A stretch of DNA of 32,723 nt from Histomonas meleagridis 2922-C6/04-290x (taxonomy: Eukaryota > Protista > Parabasalia). The notes under the pieces are model-generated. The model was not told the origin of the DNA, ran no database searches, and saw only the letters and a list, made by a program, of their open reading frames with translations. The stretch is taken from assembly GCA_020184695.1 (NCBI GenBank), contig JAANOX010000129.1, forward strand, positions 1 to 32,723. Reading direction: 5' to 3'. A program made the position numbers and the translations under genes. Positions 2,617 through 32,618 of this stretch are shown piece after piece (position 1 is the stretch's first letter; each line of letters opens with the position of its first letter).

Positions 2617-3048
2617 ATGTAGCTTATATTTTTAAATAAAACCTAGACCATTCAAATCAAAATTTCCTGTATGATATTTTTTAATTTAGCGAAAAAATTT
2701 GTACATCACGCTATTATCATCATATTGATTGATTTAGTGAAATTTTGCAAATTTTTGATGAAAAGTGCAGATTTCTAGGTCATTTCTTAGTATTATAATA
2801 ATAAATTAATTTTTTATAAATGGATACATAGTGCGCATGTAATGGATATGCTTAACTTGATTTTTCTTTAAATTTTGATTTTTGAAAATTATTATCAAAT
2901 TTCATAATTCTTTTTCCAATCAAGCATATCCATTTAATAGATCATCCAAAAATAAACTTATCTATATCAAAAAAGTTAATCAAAACGACTTAGATATCAA
3001 GTTATGGTTGATTTTATGATGATTTACGACTCTTAAATAAATTGTTTT

Positions 3049-4502
3049 TTGAATCATTTGAAATCGTGATCATCATTTAGTAAAGTATTGATTTCACACG
3101 AATTTTGTGTTGCTCTAACTTCTTGAAATAATCAAGGACTTACATAAAAAATCAAACTATTGAAAATAACACGTAAAGGCATCTTTCTTTCGAAATATTT
3201 TTTAGGTCACAATTATTATTGCTTCTTTGAACAATATGATCTCGATGAATATGAAATTCACATTCATGATGTTTATCATCTTTATTTCTCATTCAGTACA
3301 AAAATTTGATGACGCTACGGCAACACTAACAATTACAAAGTCAAGTGAATTTACAGACGAATACAAAAACAAAGCAAAGCATGTTATCATTTCAAGTGGA
3401 ATAACAAATATTCCTAATAAAGCTTTTTATTATGAATGAACTTTATTGAGTACTGTTGAAATTAGTAACTCAGTCGAAACAATTGGAGAAAGAGCATTTG
3501 GTTATTGTTCTGTTTTAAAAAAAGTTTCAGTTGGAGAAGGTATTACAGATCTAGGAGAATCTGCATTCCAATATTGTAAAGCATTATTAAACTTTACTTT
3601 TAAAGGTCCTCTTACAACAGTTGGATCAGAAGTATTCTATAGGTGCACTAGTCTTGAAACTGTAATTTTTGAAGAAGGTGTTCAGTCAATAGGTTACTTT
3701 ATGTTTTATAAATGCTCTAATCTTCAATATGTTACAATTCCAAGTACAGTTACTTCAATATCAATCAATCCATTTACTTACTGCAGTAAACTTCAAATGA
3801 TAAACATTTCAGAAAACAATCAGCATTATTTACAAGTTGATGGTGTTTTATTTGATAGGAGTTTGAAAAAGATTATAAGTTAAAAAAATGGGAAAACCAT
3901 CAAAAGAATATAAACTTCCTGATTCAGTAATTTCTATTGAAAAATGTGCATTTGCAAATTGTATTAATTTATTATCAATTACATTAGGAACAAATGTGAA
4001 TACTATAAAAAATTTTGCATTCTCTGAATGCGCGTTTCCAAGATTAGTAATTCCTGACTCTGTTATAGAAATTAAAAAACAAGCTTTTTATGATTGCCAT
4101 CAATTGGAAACAATAGTCATCGGTAAAAATGTAAAAGATATTCAAACTCTTGCATTTGGTTATTGTAAAATACTGAAATGTATTTACTTTTTTGGTGAAA
4201 CTTCTCCAAATATTGAAATGGATTCCTTTAGAAATGTTTTAGCGAAATCTGTTATGGTAAGTAAAACATATAGAGATAAAACATTTGGAGAATTAAAAAT
4301 AACCAAAGATACAATCGAAGGATGTACTTTGAATCCAACACCAACATTTACACCAAATGAAACAAATTCATTTTCACATACAAATGATGATAATTAAGTA
4401 ATCCTCTCAAAAGAATTTAATTAAGATAATTTTGTTGTTCACCCATGATCAAAAATTTTATTGAATAAAACATCAAAATTATCCCTAACCTTTGCATTTT
4501 AT

Positions 4503-4533
<31 letters not shown>

Positions 4534-4684
4534 TGAAATGTTCTAAATTGAATTAAATCACTTTTAATCACCAAAACATTTCTTAATTTTCTTCTGATTA
4601 CTCTCTGATAATTTTAATCTTCATTTCGGATATTAAATATTCCTTGTATAACTAGCTTTCAATGTTATAATTTTTTTATCTATT
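3049..4684 (+). repeat. Left arm of a ~1.63-kb near-identical inverted duplication (right arm 7657-9289)
   Basis: Sequence from ttgaatcatttgaaatc (3049) to tttttttatctatt (4684) recurs as a reverse complement at 7657-9289; the ORF track gives the same peptides on opposite strands. Confidence 0.97.
3227..4397 (+). pseudogene. BspA-like leucine-rich repeat (LRR_5/TpLRR) protein, copy 1; interrupted by an in-frame TGA (3437-3439) and a stop/frameshift at ~3881-3890
   Basis: Repeated TpLRR-type motifs (IGERAFGYCSVLKKVSV, IEKCAFANCINLLSITL, IKKQAFYDCHQLETIVI), hydrophobic N-terminus MNMKFTFMMFIIFISHS and short PT-rich tail EGCTLNPTPTFTPNET. ORFs 3227 and 3446 are in the same frame. The true start is probably a downstream ATG. 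Confidence 0.9.
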
Positions 4685-4716
4685 CAATGTCAGACCATAA
4701 AAATCAATCAACTCAA

Positions 4717-5232
4717 TTAAATGAAAGTGTGAAAACAATTGGATCTTATATGTTTCAATTTCAAAAACAGTTTCTTTGATATCATCAAATCCATTTGTTG
4801 ATTGTGACAATCTTCAAATTATAAATATTTCCAAAGAAAATCCATATTACACAGAACGTGATGGAGTTTTATATGATAAGAGTATTACAAAACTCATAAG
4901 TTATCCATATGGAAATTCATCTAAAGAATTTAAAGTTCCAGATTCAGTTATATCAATAGAAGAAAGTGCGTTTGAAATGTGTATAAAGTTATTATCAATT
5001 TCATTTGGAAGAAGTGTAAAAATTATAAAAAATAATGCATTTTCTGAATGTTTATTTACAAACATAACAATTCCTAACTCTGTTGTAGAAATTGGAATAG
5101 GTGCTTTTTCCATATGTGAAAAATTAAGCACGATTTTCATTGGAGCAAATGTAAAAAAAGTATTGGTAGTTCTGCCTTTAATTTTTTTGTACTTCACTCA
5201 AATGCATTTATTTTTTTATGGTGAAACAGAGA
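4717..5232 (+). pseudogene. BspA-like LRR fragment, truncated at both ends
   Basis: NPFVDCDNLQIINISKENPYYTERDGVLYDKSITKLISYPYG and IEESAFEMCIKLLSISF are paralogous to copy 1. The match stops abruptly after FFYGET. Confidence 0.85.
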
Positions 5233-6650: not shown

Positions 6651-7028
6651 CTCTAAATTACGAAATCATCCAAATGTGAAAATTTAACAAACAATTTTCC
6701 TCATTATTATGGATAATTTAACTCTGAAAGCTTTCCAATTTATCAATATTAATATTTTTTTCTATGTAATAATAATAATTTTTATGTTTCTCACTTTCTA
6801 ATGCAAATCAACACTTCTATTTATTCTAAAAAATATTTTTCATATATAATCCTTTTCATTGCCAAAGTTTTGGGCAAAAATAAAAAATTCATAATTATCA
6901 GATATTAAAGGTAGTTAAAACTCGATGGTTTTTTAAAATTATTTTTTTGTTATTCTCATCATATACATAAAAGGGTAAAAAGGGATAATGAAATCTATTG
7001 GTGTATTCAGTATCATCTATTGCAACAC

Positions 7029-7542
7029 AATATATAATCGTAATAATATATATAATCGTAATAATATATATAATCGTAATAATATATATAATCGTAATAA
7101 TATATATAATCGTAATAATATATATAATCGTAATAATATATATATAATCGTAATAATATATATAATCGTAATAATATATATATAATCGTAATAATATATA
7201 TATAATCGTAATAATATATATATAATCGTAATAATATATATATAATCGTAATAATATATATATAATCGTAATAATATATATATAATCGTAATAATATATA
7301 TATAATCGTAATAATATATATAATCGTAATAATATATATAATCGTAATAATATATATATAATCGTAATAATATATATATAATCGTAATAATATATATATA
7401 ATCGTAATAATATATATAATCGTAATAATATATATAATCGTAATAATATATATATAATCGTAATAATATATATAATCGTAATAATATATATAATCGTAAT
7501 AATATATATAATAGTAATAATATATATAATAGTAATAATATA
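7029..7542. repeat. Minisatellite, ~27 units of 18/20 bp (AATATATA[TA]TAATCGTAAT)
   Basis: Visible tandem array with length variation in the (TA) run; the last two units carry ATAGTA instead of ATCGTA. Confidence 0.97.
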
Positions 7543-7656
7543 TTATTTATAATCCTGATATTAGCATATATCATATCAAAAGCTTATAAAAAATTCATTT
7601 AATTTATTTTATTCACTGATACAAAATATAATTCACACTAATATTTCGAAAAATAA

Positions 7657-9289
7657 AATAGATAAAAAAATTATAACATTGAAAGCTAGTTATACAAGGA
7701 ATATTTAATATCCGAAATGAAGATTAAAATTATCAGAGAGTAATCAGAAGAAAATTAAGAAATGTTTTGGTGATTAAAAGTGATTTAATTCAATTTAGAA
7801 CATTTCAAATAATAATAATAATAATAATAAATAAAATAAAATGCAAAGGTTAGGGATAATTTTGATGTTTTATTCAATAAAATTTTTGATCATGGGTGAA
7901 CAACAAAATTATCTTAATTAAATTCTTTTGAGAGGATTACTTAATTATCATCATTTGTATGTGAAAATGAATTTGTTTCATTTGGTGTAAATGTTGGTGT
8001 TGGATTCAAAGTACATCCTTCGATTGTATCTTTGGTTATTTTTAATTCTCCAAATGTTTTATCTCTATATGTTTTACTTACCATAACAGATTTCGCTAAA
8101 ACATTTCTAAAGGAATCCATTTCAATATTTGGAGAAGTTTCACCAAAAAAGTAAATACATTTCAGTATTTTACAATAACCAAATGCAAGAGTTTGAATAT
8201 CTTTTACATTTTTACCGATGACTATTGTTTCCAATTGATGGCAATCATAAAAAAGCTTGTTTTTAATTTCTATAACAGAGTCAGGAATTACTAATCTTGG
8301 GAAACGCGCATTCAGAGAATGCAAAATTTTTTATAGTATTCACATTTGTTCCTAATGTAATTGATAATAAATTAATACAATTTGCAAATGCACATTTTTC
8401 AATAGAAATTACTGAATCAGGAAGTTTATATTCTTTTGATGGTTTTCCAGTTGGGTAACTTATAATCTTTGTCAAACTCCTATCAAATAAAACACCATCA
8501 ACTTGTAAATAATGCTGATTGTTTTCTGAAATGTTTATCATTTGAAGTTTACTGCAGTAAGTAAATGGATTGATTGATATTGAAGTAACTGTACTTGGAA
8601 TTGTAACATATTGAAGATTAGAGCATTTATAAAACATAAAGTAACCTATTGACTGAACACCTTCTTCAAAAATTACAGTTTCAAGACTAGTGCACCTATA
8701 GAATACTTCTGATCCAACTGTTGTAAGAGGACCTTTAAAAGTAACACGATTTAATGCTTTACAATATTGGAATGCAGATTCTCCTAGATCTGTAATACCT
8801 TCTCCAACTGAAACTTTTTTTAAAACATAACAAGAACCAAATGCTTTTTCTCCAATTGTTTTGACTGAGTTACTAATTTCAACAGTACTCAATAAAGTTC
8901 ATTCATAATAAAAAGCTTTATTAGGAATATTTGTTATTCCACTTGAAATGATAACATGCTTTGCTTTGTTTTTGTATTCGTCTGTAAATTCACTTGACTT
9001 TGTAATTGTTAGTGTTGCCGTAGCGTCATCAAATTTTTGTACTGAATGAGAAATAAAGATGATAAACATCATGAATGTGAATTTCATATTCATCGAGATC
9101 ATATTGTTCAAAGAAGCAATAATAATTGTGACCTAAAAAATATTTCGAAAGAAAGATGCCTTTACGTGTTATTTTCAATAGTTTGATTTTTTATGTAAGT
9201 TCTTGATTATTTCAAGAAGTTAAAGCAACACAAAATTCGTGTGAAATCAATACTTTACAAAATGATGGTCATGATTTCAAATGATTCAA
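7657..9289 (-). repeat. Right arm of the inverted duplication
   Basis: Reverse complement of 3049-4684. The outer junction coincides with the perfect 12-bp palindrome AAGTCTAGACTT (9288-9299). Confidence 0.97.
7941..9111 (-). pseudogene. BspA-like LRR protein, copy 2; same in-frame TGA (8899-8901) plus its own frameshift at ~8300
   Basis: ORFs 8899-9111, 8281-8892 and 7941-8324 match copy 1. This copy keeps the intact ISYPTG segment but has an extra C (tttcccaag vs tttccaag). Confidence 0.9.
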
Positions 9290-9399: not shown

Positions 9400-12723
<3,324 letters not shown>

Positions 12724-17996: not shown

Positions 17997-18735
17997 TTAT
18001 GCACGAACACCAAGATTTTGTTCTTTGTTATCATCATTGCTATTATCATCTTTAATAATAATCATTTTATCATTATCATTAAATGATCCTTCATTAATTT
18101 GATTTCTTTTCTTTCGAATGTAAATTAAAAATGTAATAATTAATGAAGCAACAATAACGATTCCAATTGCAACAACAACACCAATATAAAGTTTTGTCTT
18201 ATCTTCATTTTTAATAACATTGTTTTCAATAATATAAAAACCTGAATAAGACATGAAATAATCAGAATAAAGACTAACTGTATAATCATAATATATAACT
18301 GATGTTGAAATATATGTTGATATTGAATTGGTATTGGTGAGAATCATTGAATTGATATATGAGCTATAAAAACTTAATGTTTGTGTCATTGATAAAATAT
18401 ATGTCACTGAATATGAATGTGTTAAAGTTACATCAGAAGAATATGTTTCTGTAAATGTGGAATATGATGAAAATGAATTTAATTCAGTAAGTGTATTTGA
18501 ATGTGAACCTGTACTTGATATTGAAAATGAACCTGAATTGGTAAATGTATTTGGATATGTATTTGAATTTGACATAGGAAATGTATTTGAATGTGAACCT
18601 GACATAGTAAATGTATTTGAATGTAAACCTGACATAGTAAATGTATTTGAATGTGAAAATGAACTTGATTGTGTAAAAATATTTGTTTCAGTTGGTGTAA
18701 ATGTTTGTGTATGTATTGGATTACATCCTTCAAAT
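17997..18735 (-). pseudogene. Orphan C-terminal half of a BspA-type surface protein (S/T-rich stalk, transmembrane helix, short tail), 5'-truncated
   Basis: The frame begins EGCNPIHTQTFTPTETN, similar to EGCTLNPTPTFTPNETN of the BspA copies. It has S/T-rich repeats, the TM segment LYIGVVVAIGIVIVASLIITFLIYI and a positive-inside RKKR. No LRRs upstream. Confidence 0.75.
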
Positions 18736-19164
18736 GAAAATATAAATGAATAAAATTTCGGTGTTTTCAGGTAAATTTTAAAAAAGTTGATTTTTTCTCA
18801 ATATAAAATCATTTTAATTCTAAGATACTCAAAGCAATATATGTACATCAGTCAAACATTTGGATAGCATTGAAAAATATAAGATAAATTTTTTTTTTTA
18901 GAAATACGTGATGATTCAAAAATTTCCATATTTTTTGATGAAATTTTATATTTAACTTATGCATATCATGAGATTTATGTTATAGTATAAATTCCAATAT
19001 GTTTTTGCAACGTCAAAGAGTTTTGAAAAAATGTAATTTTTCTAAAAAAAAAAAAAAAGTTTTTTTATGATTCCTTGCATAACTAAAGTTGATAATGTGA
19101 TGATATTATATTTCAAGAATGAGAAAAGCGCATTTGTGAATTCTTCAAAAAGTTATTTTAAGGG
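18731..19164 (-). repeat. ~430-bp dispersed repeat, copy B
   Basis: Diverged reverse complement of 2187-2616. Confidence 0.9.
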
Positions 19165-19642
19165 ATTACAATATAGACCCTTTAGCTATGTTTATAAGAG
19201 TATCCTACGTATACGGGCAATGCCATGCGTGGAAACAATACAAGTTCCACAAAAAGTATTTGAGTAATAAAAAATATTGAAAGATTAAAAACATCAACAT
19301 TCTTTCTGGAAATGATTTTTTCTTTTTTTATACGATATATTTATATTTTATTTTCTTGAATATAGTTAGAACACTAATAGTTAATTTTATATTCAAGGGC
19401 AATCAAAGATTCCTTTTGTAATTTCACCAAAAAGAAGGATTTGAAATATACATTTTGAGTTTTGATGAATTTGTATAGTTTATTATAAAAGTGATGTGTT
19501 TTTCGATTTTCATTGAATTCATTTTACCTCGGGTTGCGAGACCTCATAGAAAATATTGAATGAATAATGGCACTTGTCGGGAAAAGAGTTTTTTTGGGCT
19601 GTGCAAAATCATTGGAATTTATTCCAGGATGGTGAGTGCTTT

Positions 19643-22380: not shown

Positions 22381-24719
22381 TTATGCATTTTCGTTTTCGA
22401 AATATATATTTCTAATTTTATTTCTAAATGGACAATTGTTCTTATAATGACCTATTTCTTTGCATACACTACATCTCCTTCCTTCTTCCATGCTTATTTT
22501 TTGTTGTAATTTTACCCACTCACTATAGCCAATGCAATCTTTTGTTCCATGTTGCAATGAACAAATTTCACAAATCTTTGGATGATTAACATTTTGTTGA
22601 TGCATTTTTGTTGTTCGTATTCTGCATCTTGGAATTCCAGGTGCATCTTCAAATATTAGTCCATCAATATCTTCAATCTTATTTCCTCCCTGAATTCTAA
22701 GCATGTTTTCATATATATAATTTAATTGTTTCAATGTTTCACGATATGCATCATTCGAACGACTTGCAAGAGAAGCGATCTCTTTTCCTCTATGAAGTAA
22801 TTCAAGATATCTAGCCTTTTGGTTTTCTTCTTTTAATTCACTTATATCTTCTTCTTCGTTATCTTCTTCTTCAAAGTATATTAATTCTTCTTTTTCACCA
22901 TCGTCAAATTTTACCATTATATCTTCTATTTCACCATTTAATTGGTGATTTTGCTCTTTAATCCAAAATGGATTTATAAAACGACCAACTTCATTGATTT
23001 TATCAAGATAAATATATAAGGAAATTAAGTGAACACATGGAATTCCTGAAACCATGTGTTCATTGCAAATACATTTTTCAGGAGTGACCATTATTGAATC
23101 TTCCTCATATTCTGGAAGACAACAAATATAATTGTTTTCCACCATTTGAGTTATTTTATAATTTTTTGCCCTCTCCAAATTTTTCATTAGTTTTATTTGT
23201 ATTTTTGGGCATAATTCATATAGAAATGGTGATTCCATTTTTCTTCTTCTATAATCTTTTTGGCGGTTGGAATGATATGCATTCATATCGCATATATTAA
23301 TTGCTTGTCTTATTGCAAGCAAATTATTTGTCGATTTATTTAACCTGCATTTAATCATTCTATTTCTTGATTCTGCATTACTAGTGGTATTTATTCCTTT
23401 CGTGAAAACATTGATTTTTGATTTAGCAAATTTCGTTATCAAAGGAATTACATTTTCTTCCATGTATTTTTTAATTTTAGGATGTATTGTTTGTAATTTT
23501 TCGATTAATTCATCAACTACTTCTGGGTTATTATCATAGCATATTTGATGAAACATTAATGATGCAGCTTTTTTTTGATCTTTACTCAAACCAAACTCAT
23601 TTAATTTTTTGTTAAAATTGTTTTCTTTATGTTTTGCACATAAAAGGTGATTAAAATTGATTCCTTCGGCGTTTAACTTTTTAAATGCAGGTATATAAGC
23701 TCTGTCTTCATCCGTTATTATAGTTTTACAATGAAATTCTTTCAATGTATATAAATTATGAATTAGCCAATTAATTATTGTTTTATCCATCATGGCTGAA
23801 AATAAAACACCACCAGATCTTATTCTACAGTCGTTATCTAATAGTGTTATTGGCGTCATTTCCCAACGCAATTGATGTGTTGGGAGTTGAGTTCCATCAA
23901 TTTGGATTATGTCTGAGAAACAATCAAGATTATGTAATTCGTAGTCCATAATTGTCAAAATAGCAATTCTTCTTACTTTTTCAGAAAATCCAATATCAAA
24001 TGAGAATACTTTCCCACCATTTTTTTCTACAAAATCTTGAAGCATAAGAGTTTCAGGTAAAAAGTTTTTGAGCTCTTTTTTATAAATAATTTGTGCTATA
24101 TCAAATGTTGTAAGATTTAATTCAGGTGCAAAAATTGGAATAATATCTTGTATTTGTGTGGGCGTAAGAATTGTACCCAATCTTTTAATAATCACATCCT
24201 TGGTGCCTTCTTGTAATACGCTTAAATATCTAGTGGGTTCATAATCGTTGTGATTATTAATTAATATAGATTTTTTAGATATATAAAATTCATTTGAACC
24301 TGTTTTTGTAATTTTTATGATGAATGGACATTTTGTTTTTTTAGTCTTTTTGAAATTACGAATTCTACCTCCTTTTTCACAATAGAGTGTGCATCTGATG
24401 TCATTTTTACCGTCCCATCGGCATAATTTAAATCCATTCTCCAATGCGATCTTTTTCAAATATTCAATGATTTCAAACATATCTTCTGAGTGAATTTTGG
24501 AAGTTCGACTTGATTGAAAAAATTAATACCTGATTGTTTGATTGGTAATAATATATCTACATTTTGAATAAATAATTTTGGAATTGGGAAATTTTGTTGA
24601 ATTGCATAAACAATAATTTCTTTTTCTAATTTTTGAAAAAAATGAAATGGTACTTTTTGATCCGAAGGTACCATTTCATATAATTTCTCAATTGATAAAT
24701 CAAATAGATTTGTTTCCAT
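22381..24719 (-). CDS. Mutator-like (MULE) DDE transposase with FAR1/WRKY-type N-terminal domain, SWIM finger and C-terminal zinc knuckles; one apparent frameshift at ~24497
   Basis: 699-aa ORF: YCEKGG...KTKCPF...NNHN; IQIDGT (D1), IITDED (D2), LLCAKH (CxxH), NAESRN (E); SWIM CICNEHMVSGIPCVH; CSVCKEIGHYKNNC. Adding one A to ccaaaattcac joins ORF 24456-24719 in frame. Confidence 0.92.
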
Positions 24720-25200: not shown

Positions 25201-25406
25201 AGGAATATAAATTTTGTACAATATATATTCGTTTTAATATTTCTAAATGTATATTAATATTGGTAGAAATTAATAAATTTTGTATATAAGTTGAATAATA
25301 ATTATTCATAAATTGGATAGAAAAGTAATTGAGTGATTGATTAAAATGTCAATCTAATTTTACATATAGCAATGTAATTATTTAGGATGTCATTATTTTG
25401 TACAAA

Positions 25407-25615
25407 ATAATAATGTTATACATAATAGTGTTATTATTAATAGTGTTATACATAATAGTGTTATTATTAATAGTGTTATACATAATAATGTTATTATTAA
25501 TAGTGTTATTATTAATAATGTTATACATTATAATGTTATTATTGCTAGTGTTATACATAATAGTGTTATTATTAATAATGTTATACATAATAGTGTTATT
25601 ATTAATAATGTTATA
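25407..25615. repeat. Tandem array of alternating 15-bp subunits (TAATGTTATACATAA / TAGTGTTATTATTAA types)
   Basis: Directly visible; runs straight into the (CA)n module. Confidence 0.92.
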
Positions 25616-25680
25616 CACACACACACACAGCGCTATTTGAGCTTCGCGTTTCACGCTTCGCTCAATCCCGCGCTAAATAA
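25614..25680. other. Structured module M1: (CA)n-AGCGC-TATTT-GAGC-ttc-GCGT-ttc-ACGC-ttc-GCTC-aatccc-GCGCT-AAATA
   Basis: Nested stems; homologous to M2 at 28856-28920 with compensatory changes. Confidence 0.85.
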
Positions 25681-25763
25681 AAGAAAGCATTGGCGCCAAG
25701 AGGAAGAATGAAAATTAGAACCAACGGTCACATTTAAAGATAAGCATGTGCGGAAAATCTAAC

Positions 25764-25876
25764 TATAACTTGTAACGTAACGTTACCTGTAACTTTGACA
25801 ATTTGGAAAAAAGAAGAAGGAGGATAAAAAGTGAGAGGAGGCTCTGTTACCAGGTTACGTTACGTTACAAGTTATA
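25764..25876. promoter_or_regulatory. ~30-bp inverted repeat built from GTAAC/GTTAC pentamers around a purine-rich spacer; candidate origin or protein-binding site
   Basis: TATAACTTGTAACGTAACGTTACCTGTAAC (25764-25793) vs GTTACCAGGTTACGTTACGTTACAAGTTATA (25846-25876), ending 52 bp before the helicase ATG. The repeat is seen; the function is inferred. Confidence 0.6.
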
Positions 25877-25928
25877 AATTAAGCTTAGTTTTAAAGTAGT
25901 AATTTGATTTTTTAATGCAACTGAAAAG

Positions 25929-27278
25929 ATGTCAGAAGTTACGATTAATATAAACAATTCTTTCTGTTTAATGAACATCAGAAATAATGCTCCATATGAT
26001 TCAAACGGAGACGAAGCAATAAATGATTTAAAGAAATGTTTTTTAGTATGTGATTCAACACCGGAAGTGTTCATATTCATAGATTATGACGCATTAAATG
26101 ATTGTGTGAAAGTATCATATACATCAGAAAATATTGCCAAACAAAAGTTGAAAAAAATAATTATTGGTAAAAGAACTGAAGGAAACAAAACAAAAAATGT
26201 TTCCGCTTGGAATTTATATATAGAAAATACAAAAGAATTTACTGTTAAAGCATTAAAATTTTATCCAAATGATCCTCAGATTTTTTCTTACTTTAGAGGA
26301 TATGATTATAAAAAGCTTGATGAAGTCAAAAATGAAATTATCCAACCGTTTTTAGATCATGTGAGAGAAGTAATAGCAAATGGTAATGAACAAATTTATA
26401 AATATATTTTAATATGGATTGCAAGCATTCTTCGAAAACCAAACTTCAAAACTGGAATTGCATTAGTTATATTAGGAAATCAAGGAACAGGAAAAAACAC
26501 ATTCTTTACAGATGTAATATGCAAATTAATGGCAAGATACGCAAATGAAAACGTTACAAATATTGAGTCAGTCGTAGGAAAATTCAATGCAACATTAGAA
26601 AATAAAAAATTACTGGTTTTAAATGACCTTCAAAGTATTGATACCAATAAATTTTTAAATTCTGATGCTTTGAAGTCTATAATAACAGATAAAACAATGA
26701 ATATCAATCAAAAGAATGAACCGATGCGTGAAACGGAAAATGTTGCTAATTTTATTATGGTTTCAAACAATGATGTTCCAATCAAGATTGAAAGCTATGA
26801 TATAAGATATCTTGTGACTAAAACTAGTGATAAACATTTACAAGATTTTAAATATTTTGCAAAATTGGCAAAAACATTTACACCTGAATTTTATGAAAAT
26901 TTATTTACATTTTTCATGATGATGGATGTGTCAAAAGCAAATTTAAGAATAATACCAAATACTGAAGCAAAAGAAAATATGAAAAAAGCTTATATGTCAA
27001 GTTATGAAATTTTCGCTAGAGATGACTATGATAAAATCAAAAATATTACTGGACCAGACTTGTTTAATTTATATTGTGATTTTATTGATAAAAATAAATT
27101 TAACAGTTGCAGTAAAAGGACTTTTATTGCAAATATGAAAAAATTCACTGGAAATGCTTCTGCAAAAAGGATTGATGGAAAAGTATTTAAAGTGTATAAT
27201 TCATTACCAGAAGTATATGATAGGTTTGAAAAAGTCCATAAGACATTAGAAGAGCAAATAGTTGCTGATGAATTATAA
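25929..27278 (+). CDS. SF3 (D5-like) helicase lacking a primase domain
   Basis: Walker A GNQGTGKN, Walker B LLVLND, motif C NFIMVSNN. Aligns by eye to residues ~305-735 of the ORF at 30411. Confidence 0.88.
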   Translation: MSEVTININNSFCLMNIRNNAPYDSNGDEAINDLKKCFLVCDSTPEVFIFIDYDALNDCVKVSYTSENIAKQKLKKIIIGKRTEGNKTKNVSAWNLYIENTKEFTVKALKFYPNDPQIFSYFRGYDYKKLDEVKNEIIQPFLDHVREVIANGNEQIYKYILIWIASILRKPNFKTGIALVILGNQGTGKNTFFTDVICKLMARYANENVTNIESVVGKFNATLENKKLLVLNDLQSIDTNKFLNSDALKSIITDKTMNINQKNEPMRETENVANFIMVSNNDVPIKIESYDIRYLVTKTSDKHLQDFKYFAKLAKTFTPEFYENLFTFFMMMDVSKANLRIIPNTEAKENMKKAYMSSYEIFARDDYDKIKNITGPDLFNLYCDFIDKNKFNSCSKRTFIANMKKFTGNASAKRIDGKVFKVYNSLPEVYDRFEKVHKTLEEQIVADEL

Positions 27279-27490
27279 CTGATGCTTTATGAATATGTTT
27301 ATTTTTATCAAAAAAGTACCATTAAAATTTTGAGGGTTAAAAATGACCTAAAAGTGAACCCTCAACGAATCGGAGAAAATGAGCATTTTCTGAAGAATTT
27401 AAGCAAATATAATATACATATCAAATGAATCACAAAATTTCGCTCTATTCAATGCTAAGAAATTCATGTTTCAAATCGATGATATCATAA

Positions 27491-28623
27491 CTAATGCTTA
27501 CTTTCAAAAAATTCTTTTTCAATTTCTGACTGTTTATGATGAGTATTACCGCGGAGAAATGAAGCAGTGATTTTATCCTTGTATGAACGTTTCCCAGGAA
27601 CGGTAAAAAGTACTTTATACTTATTTGTTTTATAATTAAATGATAAAATTTTTTCAACGGTACCGTTCCATTTACCAGGAATTGTTGACGCATATTTAAT
27701 ATTATCAGGCTTATTCTTACCAATCGGTATTAATTTAAATCTTGGTTTTGTTATTACCGTTCCGTCTTGAGCAATTAAAACGTACATGTTTCCTTTTCTT
27801 TCATCAATTTTATAACATTCACGGCTGATTTGAAATCTTTTCTTAGTTATTCCGAGAGCTCTCCGAACTCCGGCGCCGTATGGCGCCTCATGACGTGGTA
27901 ATATATAACGTACAAATGAACCGACAGGAAGAATGAGATATTTTATTCTTTTCTGTTTATCTGAAGCTTCTAAACATTTAAAGATATATTCTTTTTCTAA
28001 ATCTTTATTATCAAACATTTCTTTTGGAGAACAACCGATGGCTGAATGGTAAGTATTATTATAAATATTCAGAAACTTTTTCATTCTTTCTGGAGTAATG
28101 AACGTATATTTTTCATCATGTGATTGATGTTTTGATTTTTCCGTTGGAGTATTCATATCTCTTATTGTTCGCATGAATCTATCAATAATGCCTAAAGACG
28201 AATGGTTTTTATCTGATATTGTATGAACGGCAACTTTATTTTTAGGAAGAAGTTTTAAATTATTTTTTTCAATAAATGCTGGTTCTTCATCTGACGTTAA
28301 TTTTACCGGATGAAATTTGACAATGAATTGTTTTAATGTTTCATGAACTGCCGAAGCTGATTTTGACATCAACCGTAAACAATAGACATATCTATTATTT
28401 GTGCCAATAAACACATGCCAATATCTTGGAGTCTTTCCTTTGGTGTTATCATATAAGGTTTTATATCTTTTGTTTTAATAAATTTATCCTTCAATCTCCT
28501 TGAAATTACTTTTTTAATTTTCTTTTCACTAACATTTGTAAATTTATTTTGCACGTGTTTTTTAACGTGACTGTAAGTTTTAAAATGTGTTTTGTCAATT
28601 TCTCTATTAACGTTTAGACTCAT
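27491..28623 (-). pseudogene. Maverick-type rve integrase, frameshifted by an internal deletion at ~28449
   Basis: Joined frames: ...DIKPYMI / DNTKGKTPRYWHVFIGTNNRY...KLTSDEEPAF...NHSSLGIIDRFMRTIRD...IYNNTYHSAIGCSP, plus a C-terminal chromo/SH3-like segment (VEKILSFNYKTNKYKVLF). The strand expected to carry the first catalytic Asp is missing. Confidence 0.85.
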
Positions 28624-28659
28624 TTAAGAGTTATTAAAACGTTTTTTTAATTATATTAA

Positions 28660-28881
28660 ATGGGATTAGGTCGTATATTCGGTGGAATAAGAAAATTTAT
28701 TCAAAATGCAGGACGACTTGTAAGAAATGTTATTGATAAAGGAAAGAGAATTTACGGTAAGGTCTCGCCAATAATCAGTCGAGGAATTGAATTTGGTAAA
28801 AAGATTCCAGGAATAATTGATACAGTAAGAAAGCGTAAAGGAGATATAACAGATAACACACACACACACAGCGCTATGTGA
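28660..28881 (+). CDS. Small, very basic, amphipathic protein (candidate virion membrane-active or core protein); C-terminus derived from module M2
   Basis: MGLGRIFGGIRKFIQNAGRLVRNVIDKGKRIYGKVSPIISRGIEFGKKIPGII shows i/i+3/4 hydrophobic periodicity with many K/R. It is divergent from the integrase across a 36-bp gap. Confidence 0.6.
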   Translation: MGLGRIFGGIRKFIQNAGRLVRNVIDKGKRIYGKVSPIISRGIEFGKKIPGIIDTVRKRKGDITDNTHTHSAM

Positions 28882-28920
28882 GCTTCGTGCTACGCACTCG
28901 CTCCCACTCGCGCTACATAA
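28856..28920. other. Structured module M2: (CA)n-AGCGC-TATGT-GAGC-ttc-GTGC-tac-GCAC-tc-GCTC-ccactc-GCGCT-ACATA
   Basis: Same orientation and stem order as M1. Confidence 0.85.
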
Positions 28921-29039
28921 ACTAAAGGATGAACGGCTAAAATCGATTGAATTATCATAAATCGGTTGGTTTTGATTGAAAGTAATAAAATATATTTAAA
29001 TTCATGATGACATTTATATTTAAATGTGTGAGGCATTAA

Positions 29040-29130
29040 ACACACACACAGCACAACTCCACTTCGTTTCTATGTGCACTTCGCTTCGCTCGGTGTGTGC
29101 TCTCAGCTCATTCTCATTCGCTTCGAGAAT
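29040..29130. other. More diverged (CA)n-led GC-rich module M3 with GCTTCGC and TTCTC/GAGAA stems
   Basis: Shares ACACACACACAGC with M1/M2; GCTTCGC at 29083-29089; hairpin 29111-29129. Confidence 0.55.
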
Positions 29131-29158
29131 AAAATTAAATTTTGAAGTATATATCTAA

Positions 29159-29645
29159 CATGATAATGATAAATATTAGGTTTTTAAAAGTTGAATTTTC
29201 AAACATATATATCCTTACATGATAATGATAAATATTAGGTTTTTAAAAGTTGAATTTTCAAAATATATTCTTCAAAGTCCTTGTGTCCACGGTTGTCTTA
29301 TGGACGAACACTTCTCTTAAAACTTACCCGCAACACGCAACTACGCAACACGCAATTTTCAAACATATATATCCTTACATGATAATGATAAATATTAGGT
29401 TTTCGAAAGTTGAATTTTCAAAATATATATATCCTTACATGATAATGATAAATATTAGGTTTTTAAAAGTTGAATTTTCAAAATATATATCTAACATGAT
29501 AATGATAAATATTAGGTTTTTAGAAGTTGAATTTTCAAAATATATTCTTCAAAGTCCTTGTGTCCACGGTTGTCTTATGGACGAACACTTCTCTTAAAAC
29601 TTACCCGCAACACGCAACTACGCAACACGCAATTTTCAAACATAT
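29159..29645 (+). repeat. Composite tandem array A-A-B-A-A-A-B (A ~59 bp, B ~90 bp)
   Basis: A (CATGATAATGATAAATATTAGGTTT...GTTGAATTTTCAAA) starts at ~29159, 29218, 29378, 29438 and 29495. Identical B copies (TATTCTTCAAAGTCCTTG...CTTACCCGCAACACGCAA...) lie at ~29266-29355 and ~29543-29632. Confidence 0.93.
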
Positions 29646-30196
29646 GATGTTGTATAATATATATTGCTACAAATTATTTTAATAATACCCTTTTATAAAA
29701 GACATAGTCAGACATAATATTATTAACATATAAATTGTTAACATATAAAATTGTTGAAATATAAATTGTTGAAATATAAATTGTTGAAAATATAATATAT
29801 ATACATATTGTCTGTCTACGTCTTTTATAAAGGGTTATTATTATAATAATTGTTAGCAATATATATTACGCAATATATATATATATTATTGTTGTTATGT
29901 TGCGTAATTGCGTAAATTGTCGTGTTGCGGGTAAGTTTTAGATGAAGTTATATGTCTACGGACAGACTGGGACATCAAGGACTTTGAAGAAATACTATAA
30001 AAATAACCAAAATAACATACTTTTAATACATATATTTTTACACAACATTTTTTAAAACTTATGTTGTTTGTAATTATATTGTTAATAATATTTTTGTTGC
30101 GTAATTGCGTAAATTGTCGTGTTGCGGGTAAGTTTTAGATGAAGTTATATGTCTACGGACAGACTGGGACATCAAGGACTTTGAAGAAATACTATA
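29266..30196. repeat. Large imperfect palindrome centred at ~29760
   Basis: Inner arms 29656-29715 / 29807-29867 surround four ~14-bp ATATAAATTGTT(G/A)A units. Outer B copies (29266, 29543) face two diverged inverted B' copies (29899-29994, 30096-30196) that are identical to each other. Confidence 0.88.
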
Positions 30197-30250
30197 GATT
30201 TACTATAAATCTGCTGTAATATTGATTGTTGAAAAATAAATAATTTGTTT

Positions 30251-30289
30251 ATAAGTATTGTTTTCATAAGTATTGTTTTCATAAGTATT
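30251..30289. repeat. Short direct repeats ATAAGTATTGTTTTC (x2.6) upstream of the Prim-Pol-helicase
   Basis: Directly visible; the core GTATTGTTTT recurs at ~30362. Confidence 0.7.
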
Positions 30290-30410
30290 ATGTTTCAAAA
30301 TATATATATATATTAATATGTTTGGAAAAATATATATCAAAAATATTACTTTTAAAAAGCAGTATTGTTTTTATATAATTTCATTTTTTTTCCTCTTATA
30401 AAAATAGATC

Positions 30411-32618
30411 ATGTCGCAGACTACGACAACATTAAAAGAACGTATTGGTAATAATATCATCAACTTATATAATTACAATAAACACGACAAAAGACAACCC
30501 GGAAGAAATACTGTTACAGGCAAAGCTTTATTAAATAATAAAATTAAAAATTTATCAGTAATAGATATTGATATAAATAAATCTTTAGATAACGATACTA
30601 AAGATAAAATACGTAATAATATTTTATCTAAGTTATCTGATGATGATATTATTGTAAAAACAGCTTCAGGCGGTTTACATATATACTGTAATACTGATGA
30701 ATTTATTGCTAATAATAACAGAATGATTAAATGTTATAAATCTAATGAATTTGATATAGATATATTTAATTGTTATGATGAAAATAAACGTTCATTAATT
30801 GTAATGGCGGGTTCAAAATATAGAGATTCATCACATAAATTACCTATTTCAACATATGAATTTATTAGAGGTAATTATGACAGTATTATTATCAGAAATG
30901 TTAATGATATATTAAAGGATTTAGATATAAAAATAACTATAGAACAACCACAGGAAGTTCAAAATATTATTAAGATGTATAATAACTCTGACAATATCAC
31001 TGTCGGTTTTGCTAGAACATTAATGTATGGTTTAGAAGGTCTTGAAATACATAATGATTCTGGTGATATACCTTTATCAAAAGAAATTACATTATTCCCG
31101 CTATTTCAAGCTATTAATAGTTTACCTAATGAAGTAATAAATGAAGCATATGACTTTATATATAATAATTGTAACTTAACGCCTAATGCTAAATCTAACT
31201 TTTATAATGCTAAAGAGAGATATATGCATTTACAAACTCATTACGGAGTTTTAATTAAAATAATCAAACTTTATAATAACGATTTTTATAAGAAATTCAT
31301 TAAAAATGATGTTGACGATATTGTTATACATGATATAATACTTAATGATAATTTTAGCATGACAAATATACGTGAGAAAGCTGAGAAACATATATATAAA
31401 TGTTTTAAGGATATTGTTGAAGATCTAAGCAAAGTAATTAGATTTGTAGAAAGTAATAATTTAATGTTTATTATTAAAACGTTTGATATTCATAATGATA
31501 AATATGTTATTGGTTATATGACAAATACTAATATGAAAGAATTGCTTAAAATGATTAAACTTTGGAAAGATGATAGAAAAACAATCACTGCTTACGACGC
31601 TTTTATAGCATATCAATCAAAACTAACTATAAAGGGAGTTAGATTCTATAGTAATAACAATAAAGGTATATTTTCTATATTTCAAGGATATAAATACAAA
31701 TCTGTTGATAAAATAAACATAGATATAATATCTAATTTCTTAAATATGATTAAAGAAGTAATTGCTGATAATAATAATGATATATATAATTATCTATTAA
31801 ATTGGGTATCATATATAATACAAAATCCCGGTAAAAAAACTGAAACTGCAATTGTTTTAAAAGGATTGCAAGGTATTGGTAAGAATACATTTACTGACGT
31901 TATTTGTGAATTATTATTAAGCGGATATGATGAAAAAAATATTAATCAAATAGGTGAATTAACAGGTAATTTTAACAGCGTTGTTGAAAATAAGATGTTA
32001 TTAGTATTAAATGAATTAAAAAATGTCGGTGAAGACAGACTTGCAAATTTTGATACTTTGAAATCAATTATTACTGATAAAACTATTAGAATTAATGAGA
32101 AAAATCAACCTAGAAGAACTTCTGAAAACGTTGCTAATTGTATATTCGTTACTAATAACAGTTATCCTGTAAAAATAGAATCAGGTGACAGAAGATATGT
32201 CGTATTATTATGTAACGGTAAATATAAGGACAATCATGATTATTGGAATAATTTATATAACAGTTTTACTCCTGAGTTTTATAATCATTTATTAACATAT
32301 TTTATAAAAAAAGATATTAATAATTATAATCCCAGAATTATACCTGTAACAGAAGCTAAACAAGATTTAATAGAAGCATCAAGAAACCCTGTAGAACAAT
32401 TCATATGTGATAATTATGATAAATTATGTGAGGGTTGGTTATGTTCAGAAGTATTATATAATAAACCATATGATATTAAAGAAAGGTCTTTTCAACTTCA
32501 ATTAAAAGATAAGTGTTATAGAAAACGTCAAACTTCTGGTGAAAGAAAGTGGTATAATATATTAAAAGATGAGTATAAAAATATATATCATCAAACAGAA
32601 CATATTGACAATGATTAA
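30411..32618 (+). CDS. Intact 735-aa Prim-Pol (AEP) primase-polymerase fused to an SF3 D5-like helicase
   Basis: AEP motifs VIDID, KTASGGLHIY, FDIDIF...IVMAGS; helicase motifs GLQGIGKN, LLVLNEL, NCIFVTNN and SGDRRY. Confidence 0.92.
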   Translation: MSQTTTTLKERIGNNIINLYNYNKHDKRQPGRNTVTGKALLNNKIKNLSVIDIDINKSLDNDTKDKIRNNILSKLSDDDIIVKTASGGLHIYCNTDEFIANNNRMIKCYKSNEFDIDIFNCYDENKRSLIVMAGSKYRDSSHKLPISTYEFIRGNYDSIIIRNVNDILKDLDIKITIEQPQEVQNIIKMYNNSDNITVGFARTLMYGLEGLEIHNDSGDIPLSKEITLFPLFQAINSLPNEVINEAYDFIYNNCNLTPNAKSNFYNAKERYMHLQTHYGVLIKIIKLYNNDFYKKFIKNDVDDIVIHDIILNDNFSMTNIREKAEKHIYKCFKDIVEDLSKVIRFVESNNLMFIIKTFDIHNDKYVIGYMTNTNMKELLKMIKLWKDDRKTITAYDAFIAYQSKLTIKGVRFYSNNNKGIFSIFQGYKYKSVDKINIDIISNFLNMIKEVIADNNNDIYNYLLNWVSYIIQNPGKKTETAIVLKGLQGIGKNTFTDVICELLLSGYDEKNINQIGELTGNFNSVVENKMLLVLNELKNVGEDRLANFDTLKSIITDKTIRINEKNQPRRTSENVANCIFVTNNSYPVKIESGDRRYVVLLCNGKYKDNHDYWNNLYNSFTPEFYNHLLTYFIKKDINNYNPRIIPVTEAKQDLIEASRNPVEQFICDNYDKLCEGWLCSEVLYNKPYDIKERSFQLQLKDKCYRKRQTSGERKWYNILKDEYKNIYHQTEHIDND

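Follow-up and report, generated by a model that had tools for sequence, protein, structure and literature searches.

The 32,723-nucleotide contig JAANOX010000129.1 of the parabasalid Histomonas meleagridis 2922-C6/04-290x (hereafter the window, analysed at its full length) carries two copies, M1 and M2, of a compact module that reads, on the minus strand, as a hairpin with G-N-A loops followed by a (TG)n tract. The first-pass annotation of this DNA had taken the module for a selected nucleic-acid structure tied to virus-like genes, and comparison with relatives bears this out: across five lineages the structure is kept and the sequence drifts. In the reading that we favour, and that we regard as about evenly balanced, the module is a terminal cis-acting DNA signal of integrase-encoding Polinton-like elements of tritrichomonad parabasalids (Histomonas and its gut relatives) and of a 181-bp mini-element with a borrowed copy of that end; the most likely role of such a signal is in copying or inserting the element. 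Polinton-like viruses and Mavericks occupy large portions of protist genomes, and the question addressed here is how the ends of such elements are defined and copied with a primase-helicase rather than a protein-primed polymerase. The module provides a sequence-level handle on this question: a compact, structure-conserved and strand-asymmetric end that marks off elements both in parabasalids of the Histomonas type and in gut metagenomes of humans and animals.

Structure of the M1 and M2 modules

M1 (25615–25690) and M2 (28856–28930) are the only copies of this kind in the window. The BLAST match between them is restricted to 25615–25681 versus 28856–28921 (67 nt, 82% identity) and stops abruptly on both sides. 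Each module is led on the plus strand by (AC)7A (25615–25629 and 28856–28870, respectively), and the 17-nt lead motif has two exact matches in the window against 0.00 expected from shuffled sequences. In M1 the order of the parts is AGCGC (25629–25633), TATTT, GAGC, TTC, GCGT, the loop TTC, ACGC, TTC, GCTC, AATCCC, GCGCT (25670–25674) and AAATA (25675–25679); M2 repeats this order at 28870–28919, with GTGC/GCAC as its inner stem and TATGT/ACATA as the counterpart of TATTT/AAATA. On the minus strand the apical loops are GAA in M1 and GTA in M2, and GCGAAGC occurs twice in M1. Order, coordinates, loops and the double GCGAAGC are all as first described.

With DNA or RNA parameters, and on either strand, both modules fold into a single nested hairpin with AGCGC/GCGCT (A/A') as the outer, GAGC/GCTC (C/C') as the middle and the inner stem (D/D') as the apical tier (z-scores –1.6 to –4.1). 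Two pairs of the apical stem differ between M1 and M2, and both differences are compensated, in agreement with the initial claim. That claim had extended to a third compensatory change, in TATTT/AAATA (B/B'), and to a pseudoknot or two-state switch arising from the crossing of A/A' and B/B'. The sequences are indeed as described, but the B/B' pairing is not used in the minimum-energy fold of either module, and the A-to-C change in B' also pairs, within the nested fold, with a spacer base that changed from T to G. Because the B' change has a nested partner too, the third compensatory change and the pseudoknot are both ambiguous; a pseudoknot or switch is not needed, and we retain the crossing and the nested reading of B/B' side by side.

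Recurrence in relatives and conservation of the structure

A covariance model built from M1 and M2 only, and run over 80 kb with filters off, finds one module in L026, a gut-metagenome relative (35.9 bits, E = 5e-8), and two in the human-gut metagenome contig L017 (E = 4.6e-4 and 3.6e-3), followed by noise; over a further 90 kb it gave no match. The L026 module has (CA)6, a 5-bp outer stem, a 6-bp inner stem and a GCA loop on the TG strand. The two L017 copies, 92% alike, have a GTGTGTG/CACACAC outer stem, a 12-bp inner stem and a GCA loop, followed by (TG)5, and bracket a 6.5-kb block that ends with an integrase. Taken alone, the L026 and L017 modules fold to the same shape as M1 and M2, which we call type I (z-scores –2.6 to –6.3). 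Modules of a second kind (type II) end in (TG)5–7 and have small hairpins with GTA loops; they are found 800–900 nt past the integrase stop in L013 and in the Histomonas contig L016, and ∼ 480 nt upstream of a short helicase in L032. Between L013 and L016 the genes are 91–93% and the non-coding regions 77–87% identical, and the similarity ends at the last TG.

In the alignment of the copies 99% of the cells are paired and 12 of the 17 pairs have changed on both sides, counts that come from six sequences of about four lineages in an alignment fitted to the model; none of 500 shuffles reached this level and controls with slid partners scored far lower. The two inner helices contain Watson–Crick pairs only, with no G-U. 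The TG-strand loops are GAA, GTA, GCA, GCA and GTA, so that all five share the outer G and A and differ only at the middle base, even as the stems diverge; G-N-A is found in six of the eight GC-rich triloop hairpins that lie upstream of at least four TG repeats. The pair closing the loop is C:G in M2, L026, L017 and type II, and T:A in M1. As had been proposed, the G-N-A triloop is confined to a single strand, which in the window is the minus strand.

Polarity is the same in each of the ten instances, with the leading strand starting in (AC)n and with unrelated outside flanks, and on the integrase-sense strand the order is invariably hairpin, (TG)n, end of homology. No gene other than the integrase goes with all module types. 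The 15-kb contig L014, a larger relative, encodes an integrase, a helicase and a packaging ATPase of the Pox_A32 type, and because it joins these three the family can be described as Polinton-like. L001, L002 and L015 are close relatives by their genes, but their contigs end before the expected place of the module. A scan of IMG/VR and the JGI (Joint Genome Institute) metagenomes with the module pattern returned only chance matches in GC-rich bacterial contigs, and no integrase relative was found in IMG/VR; public collections that can be searched with DNA patterns do not hold these organisms, and the set of copies is small. The capsid-sized proteins of the relatives had no match in Pfam.

Several side observations concern the same loci. 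Nearly all metagenome contigs with a short helicase are 1.4–2.5 kb long, and contigs of the P0144 integrase family end 60–450 nt past the integrase stop; these are assembly breaks in the repeat-rich end region. L013 has at 3920–4200, directly after its integrase, a palindromic structure of GGTGAAAT/ATTTCACC units that resembles a miniature inverted-repeat transposable element (MITE), beyond which lie ∼ 280-bp repeat units and a scaffold gap. L026 has, at 2861–3439 beside its short helicase, an open reading frame (ORF) similar to HNH_3/NUMOD4 homing endonucleases.

The modules are tips of separate units

M1 and M2 had been taken for two signals inside one virus-like cluster. They are the tips of separate units instead, and homology to relatives starts or stops exactly at (AC)n (features are listed in Table 1). 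The M1 unit is collinear with L026 through (AC)n, the hairpin, the shared flank motif and the GTAAC/GTTAC palindromes up to the start of the helicase, and the short helicases are 64% identical. Since this collinearity begins at (AC)n, with no similarity between the flanks outside it, M1 forms the tip of a unit with a short helicase and an integrase, here called element A. Read on the minus strand, element A consists of a gene piece, the integrase, the antisense helicase, a non-coding region and the M1 hairpin with its (TG)n. At its other side, nucleotide homology of the window to L013, L015 and L016 runs from the integrase through the intergenic region into a gene (135/159 aa) that relatives carry head-to-head with the integrase, and ends at 28856, the first base of the M2 (AC)n; the remainder of that gene is nowhere in the window.

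The integrase has 183 relatives, the full-length ones being ∼ 380 aa long. The 449-aa helicase aligns to residues 311–672 of the 735-aa protein described below, and its match in PDB is the helicase region of the NrS-1 polymerase. That M1 had cut a longer helicase gene was considered and rejected: relatives of this protein are uniformly 445–465 aa long, so it represents a family of short helicases. We found no exact-sequence records for the helicase proteins of the window. The GTAAC/GTTAC motif is also present upstream of the short helicase in L026–L031, and the palindrome that it forms in the window is a candidate for the iterons of a helicase-binding origin.

M2 is the tip of a much smaller unit, E2. 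Positions 28858–29036 are 95% identical to a segment of H. meleagridis WSYJ01000164.1 (L016 5058–5237, in reverse orientation), and because this segment recurs there with different flanks on both sides we consider E2 a discrete unit of 181 bp. Within E2 the module is identical in the two loci at 51 of 51 positions, compared with 102 of 116 in the remainder (Fisher p = 0.006). The same contig, L016, contains three copies of a 54-nt motif in a tandem array of ∼ 215 bp (4262–4897) just before its E2; in the window this motif lies at 27355–27407, between the convergent helicase and integrase genes.

Microsatellites comprise 1.6–1.75% of the Histomonas genome (PMC8529796), and structures of this sort could in principle be chance by-products of CA repeats that happen to lie beside GC-rich low-complexity DNA in an AT-rich genome. 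The expectation of zero matches in shuffled sequences, recurrence at the same place in six unrelated contigs, the strong covariation and the perfect conservation of the module inside the diverging E2 effectively refute this explanation.

E2 is directly followed by a third module, M3, which is absent from the first-pass annotation. It is (CA)5-led and type II-like, its minus-strand fold has a z-score of –2.4, and it is the only further match of the type II model in the 80 kb, though marginal (15.9 bits, E = 0.05). The gene for a 735-aa protein, with which M3 forms unit B, lies 1.3 kb away. Motifs and predicted structure identify this protein as a PrimPol joined to an SF3 helicase: its first 120 residues retain the DxD and sGGLH motifs, and the model (pLDDT 88) has a fold that matches the NrS-1 polymerase in the helicase region, the full-length PrimPol of African swine fever virus (ASFV) and the primase-helicase of SaPI5. 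It has hundreds of relatives and is 84% identical to P0001; the named relatives come from Trichomonas vaginalis (57%), H. meleagridis (59%), Streblomastix and Monocercomonoides. The non-coding region of unit B is partly shared (parts of 29130–30146) with L001, where it is found on both sides of the helicase gene in inverted orientation.

Thus, on the minus strand, the window contains a chain in which the unit B non-coding region with M3 and (TG)5 is followed by E2 with (TG)7, by the cut element A with M1 and (TG)8, and by a 15-bp satellite. L016 contains a comparable chain: E2 with (TG)6, a virus-like block in which the first gene is missing its final part when compared with L017, a type II module with (TG)5, and host DNA with a PP2C gene. 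Units adjoin directly at (TG)n in the window, L016 and L017, and after E2 the gene block is cut at one point in the window and at another in L016. The possibility that (TG)n is instead the left end of the next unit, as in a canonical TG...CA junction, was rejected; no CA run precedes it in M1, M2 or L026, and the homology among copies includes the tract.

Mapped relative to the helicase and integrase genes, the copies lie at element edges with a fixed polarity; type I units have only the short helicase, without a PrimPol domain. These positions bear on a role in RNA, either as a transcript 3'-end or terminator hairpin or as a small structured RNA gene. Such a role would suit the good fold with RNA parameters (z-scores down to –4.1) and the TAAA or ATAAA that lies past the hairpin in the plus-strand reading of M1, M2 and L026, from which a 3'-end signal had originally been suggested. 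However, M1 is preceded by a satellite, and because no gene ends upstream of it that suggestion is unlikely to be correct. The modules are found 245–480 nt upstream of a helicase start or 800–900 nt past an integrase stop, no T run follows them on either strand, and, unlike a terminator, they coincide with homology breakpoints. In agreement with the earlier remark that the module was not recognised as a named family, Rfam had no match at the gathering score for the whole window; at E ≤ 5 over 25300–29300 there were two weak and unrelated matches, both outside the module. No tRNA match was obtained for the module either. All in all, a function at the RNA level is highly improbable.

Table 1. 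Features of the M1, M2 and M3 modules and of the units that carry them in the window.
Feature	Positions	Strand	Basis and remarks
15-bp satellite array	25405–25613	.	Tandem Repeats Finder; outside flank abutting the M1 tip, unlike the flank of the L026 copy
Element A, cut Polinton-like remnant	25615–28855	–	Gene order matches L015 and L013
M1 (type I)	25615–25690	–	(AC)7A 25615–25629, (TG)n on minus strand; three-tier hairpin 25629–25674; conserved flank motif 25675–25690; 107 bits
26-nt inverted repeat of GTAAC/GTTAC units	arms 25764–25789 and 25851–25876	.	96% complementary; between M1 and helicase gene
Short SF3 (D5/VapE-like) helicase, 449 aa, intact	25929–27278	+	Pfam DUF5906/VapE; without PrimPol and helix-bundle part
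rve-type integrase gene	27491–28623	–	Pfam rve; tblastn gives two pieces, each in its own frame; a single frameshift and no internal stop seen
5' piece of 135/159-aa gene homologue	28660–28857	+	tblastn, 68–71% identity to L013 and L015 products
E2, 181-bp mini-element	28856–29036	–	(AC)n-proximal 75 nt are M2 (28856–28930; GTA triloop on minus strand)
M3, degenerate type II-like module	29037–29113	–	Ends in (TG)5 on minus strand; borders the unit B non-coding region on its outer side
Repeat-rich non-coding region of unit B	29130–30410	.	59/60-bp tandem repeats, several inverted repeats
PrimPol plus SF3 helicase of unit B, 735 aa, intact	30411–32618	+	Pfam

A proposed signal for copying or insertion

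On the integrase-sense strand, which is the minus strand of the window, the end consists of the short, conserved A/T motif TTTAT.TAG, a GC-rich hairpin of two or three tiers capped by G-N-A, and (TG)n, which extends from the base of the hairpin to the tip. We infer that it acts as DNA, because d(GNA) triloops are stable in DNA, the inner pairs are all Watson–Crick and the module coincides with breakpoints of DNA homology. The hairpin would form on the single TG strand or as a cruciform and would mark the end. GTG is the template motif of pRN1 ORF904 and of the NrS-1 polymerase, whose primers start just 5' of the motif (PMC2034472, PMC8718748), and (TG)n amounts to overlapping GTG triplets; primers might therefore start within the tract, at the very tip, and copying from there would give a new strand led by (CA)k. 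A start within the tract would also tolerate the loss of repeats at the tip. The GTAAC palindrome (25764–25876) could serve as the site at which the helicase is loaded, elements with a short helicase and the mini-element would depend on a PrimPol enzyme acting in trans, and the same tip would necessarily also be seen by the integration step. Replication of pRN1 depends on a stem-loop located next to ORF904, with a conserved structure and a variable sequence (PMC4234260), and the stability of d(GNA) triloops is unusually high (PMC3201870). A priming or origin role for the Prim-Pol/SF3 machinery had been suggested before; it is compatible with the position of the module beside the helicase non-coding region and with the published GTG motif, but the helicases of type I units have no PrimPol domain. 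What the data show directly is how the module is built and conserved, that its two strands differ, and where and in which polarity it lies; its action as DNA, the priming and the reliance on an enzyme in trans are put forward as proposals.

A number of observations weigh against a terminal signal of this kind. The carriers of type I modules encode a helicase without the PrimPol and helix-bundle parts, there is no helicase beside the module in L013, L016 and L017, the one gene always near a module is the integrase, and pRN1 can do without its GTG motifs (PMC4234260). Neither a CA/TG tract nor a match to the model is present in the larger relative L014 or in L012, a relative from T. vaginalis with 57% protein identity. 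Type II modules are conserved in sequence, but their common fold is weak (z-scores –1.1 to –2.1), and attempts to obtain a stable common fold for them did not succeed. No inverted partner, opposite end or target-site duplication was seen in the window, L016 or L017, and the sample includes no complete element with both ends and no unit with two clean ends. The total sample is ten instances from about five independent lineages, and it is on six sequences of it that the pair counts draw. Finally, copies in the relatives were first noticed through their CA/TG runs, so the constant association with (TG)n is partly built in.

The opposing view with the greatest weight, which we nevertheless consider unlikely, is that the module is an end or attachment site for the integrase: the subterminal hairpin would guide the rve integrase to the (TG)n tip, and insertion would favour the (TG)n tips of resident copies, which would produce head-to-tail chains. 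Integrated copies do stop exactly at the tract, an integrase goes with every module type, the units adjoin at (TG)n in three loci, and the L017 module is nearly palindromic, so that it could be used as an inverted repeat in either orientation. However, a tip with 5' (AC)n and 3' (TG)n reverses the TG...CA rule of rve-type elements (PMC2836005, PMC10045372), neither a matching opposite end nor a target-site duplication was found, the units after E2 are cut at different internal points, unlike the products of two-ended integration, and the constraint of G-N-A to one strand is left unexplained.

The chains could also have been built by independent repeats of the retroposon type, with the 3' stem-loop and microsatellite tail of short or long interspersed elements (SINEs or LINEs), that use target-primed copying to enter one another's tails and have no tie to the virus-like genes beyond lying next to them. 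The minus-strand units end in a hairpin and then (TG)n (M1, M2, M3 and the relatives' copies), the chains run tail-to-head with variably cut upstream sides, the 181 bp of E2 form a discrete unit whose flanks differ between its two loci, and compensatory changes in the stems suit a structure recognized by an enzyme. Yet Pfam searches of the tested ORFs revealed no reverse transcriptase in the window or in 137 kb of related loci, and retroelements account for 0.01% of the genome of Histomonas (PMC8529796). The collinearity of M1 with the L026 module extends through the non-coding region into the helicase gene, type II modules keep their place after the integrase in L013 and L016, the 'body' of the M1 unit has genes on both strands, the inner helices have no G-U pairs, and no flanking duplications were seen. 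Retroposition is thus a very unlikely origin.

If the tip is indeed where copying starts, a bolder form of the favoured reading can be considered, although we regard it as improbable: the hairpin with (TG)n would be a new, 'microsatellite-tailed' genome end of small eukaryotic DNA viruses or elements, in which copying starts in the GTG tract and incomplete copies keep this end, lose the far side variably and enter the genome at resident (TG)n tails. Such a process would parallel target-primed retroposition but involve DNA only, and mini-elements such as E2 would exploit it. Whatever its function, the module is useful as a marker for annotating element borders, nested insertions and mini-elements in repeat-rich genomes. 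It explains the assembly breaks at its site and points to a testable link between the (TG)n tract and the GTG template preference of PrimPol enzymes.

Comparison with known systems

Stringent LINEs and their SINEs, such as eel UnaL2 and UnaSINE1, carry a 3' stem-loop plus a microsatellite tail. The module resembles these 3' ends in the hairpin directly before a short tandem-repeat tail, the variable upstream cuts, the tail-to-head chains and the short non-autonomous partners that share only the end module. Its carriers, unlike LINEs and SINEs, have no reverse transcriptase, live in a host almost free of retroelements, have genes on both strands and encode hallmark proteins of DNA viruses. Structured DNA at genome ends that is used for copying, and recognized as a single strand or cruciform, is also known from the terminal hairpins of parvoviruses and the hairpin ends recognized by HUH nucleases. 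In contrast to these, the module is not accompanied by an HUH nuclease, and its hairpin is subterminal, with a repeat tail beyond, and is neither a covalently closed nor a fold-back end. The 3' end of Helitrons, a hairpin ∼ 10 nt before CTRR-3' in elements with a Rep/helicase, does not match either: there is no CTRR and no HUH Rep, and the helicase is of the SF3 type.

Like the module, the stem-loop origin of the pRN plasmids (PMC4234260) is a hairpin conserved in structure despite low sequence conservation; it has GTG motifs in or near it, helicase loading and priming have been proposed for it, and it lies near a replication gene of the PrimPol/SF3 type. It differs from the module in being ∼ 100 bp long and located on a circular archaeal plasmid rather than at an end, in having neither a dinucleotide tract nor a G-N-A triloop, and in that its GTG motifs are dispensable. 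The module, on the other hand, belongs to a eukaryotic host and to the tip of an integrated element, and many of its carriers have no PrimPol domain: the neighbour is a short helicase lacking this domain in the window, L026 and L032, and no helicase is nearby in L013, L016 and L017. With the d(GNA) mini-hairpins of the d(GCGAAGC) type (PMC3201870) the module shares the G-N-A loops, the C:G closing pair (in M2, L026, L017 and type II), the literal GCGAAGC present twice in M1 and the constraint to one strand. These mini-hairpins are defined by physical chemistry and not as a genetic element, whereas the module is likened to them by its sequence, and the main loop of M1 is closed by T:A.

Among eukaryotic mobile elements, the terminal inverted repeats of Polintons, Mavericks and Polinton-like viruses (PMC10120064, PMC4642659) are ends of protist elements that encode an integrase, a capsid and a packaging ATPase, and L014 has an ATPase of the Pox_A32 type. 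Unlike them, the module has a dinucleotide tip and occurs in pairs that are all direct, not inverted (window, L016, L017), and we saw no long inverted terminal repeat or 6-bp duplication. The ends of rve, IS481EU and Ginger elements (TG...CA or TGT...ACA; PMC10045372, PMC2836005) are similar in the rve-type DDE integrase encoded by the element and in a tip made of T/G and C/A; the module differs in its reversed polarity (5'-ACAC... / ...TGTG-3'), in having a hairpin instead of short inverted repeats and in belonging to elements with several genes. The module thus shares features with the pRN origin, d(GNA) hairpins and the ends of Polinton-like, LINE/SINE and rve elements, and departs from each of them in a defining feature. 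No description of it was found in the literature searched.

Other features of the window

The window is AT-rich and carries genes for BspA-type leucine-rich repeat (LRR) proteins and a phosphodiesterase, as well as a piece of a PRP38 gene. The satellite at 25405–25613 has a 15-bp unit and a 45-bp higher-order unit. An inverted duplication of ∼ 1.6 kb (3049–4684 and 7657–9289; 98–100% identical) consists of BspA-type LRR gene pieces and surrounds an AT-rich tandem array with 18/20-bp units (7028–7606). A second inverted repeat pair (2065–2622 and 18728–19456; 86–92%), with copies 16–17 kb apart, encloses the LRR duplication and host genes, including the phosphodiesterase and the PRP38 piece. 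An intact 699-aa ORF on the minus strand (22381–24480) belongs to no Pfam family, has a weak CCHC knuckle at its C-end and has no relative in any of the fetched loci. Inside another minus-strand ORF (10192–11508), which has a weak CDC45-like match, there is a long (AAT)n/(TTA)n run (10656–10931) that would encode poly-Asn.

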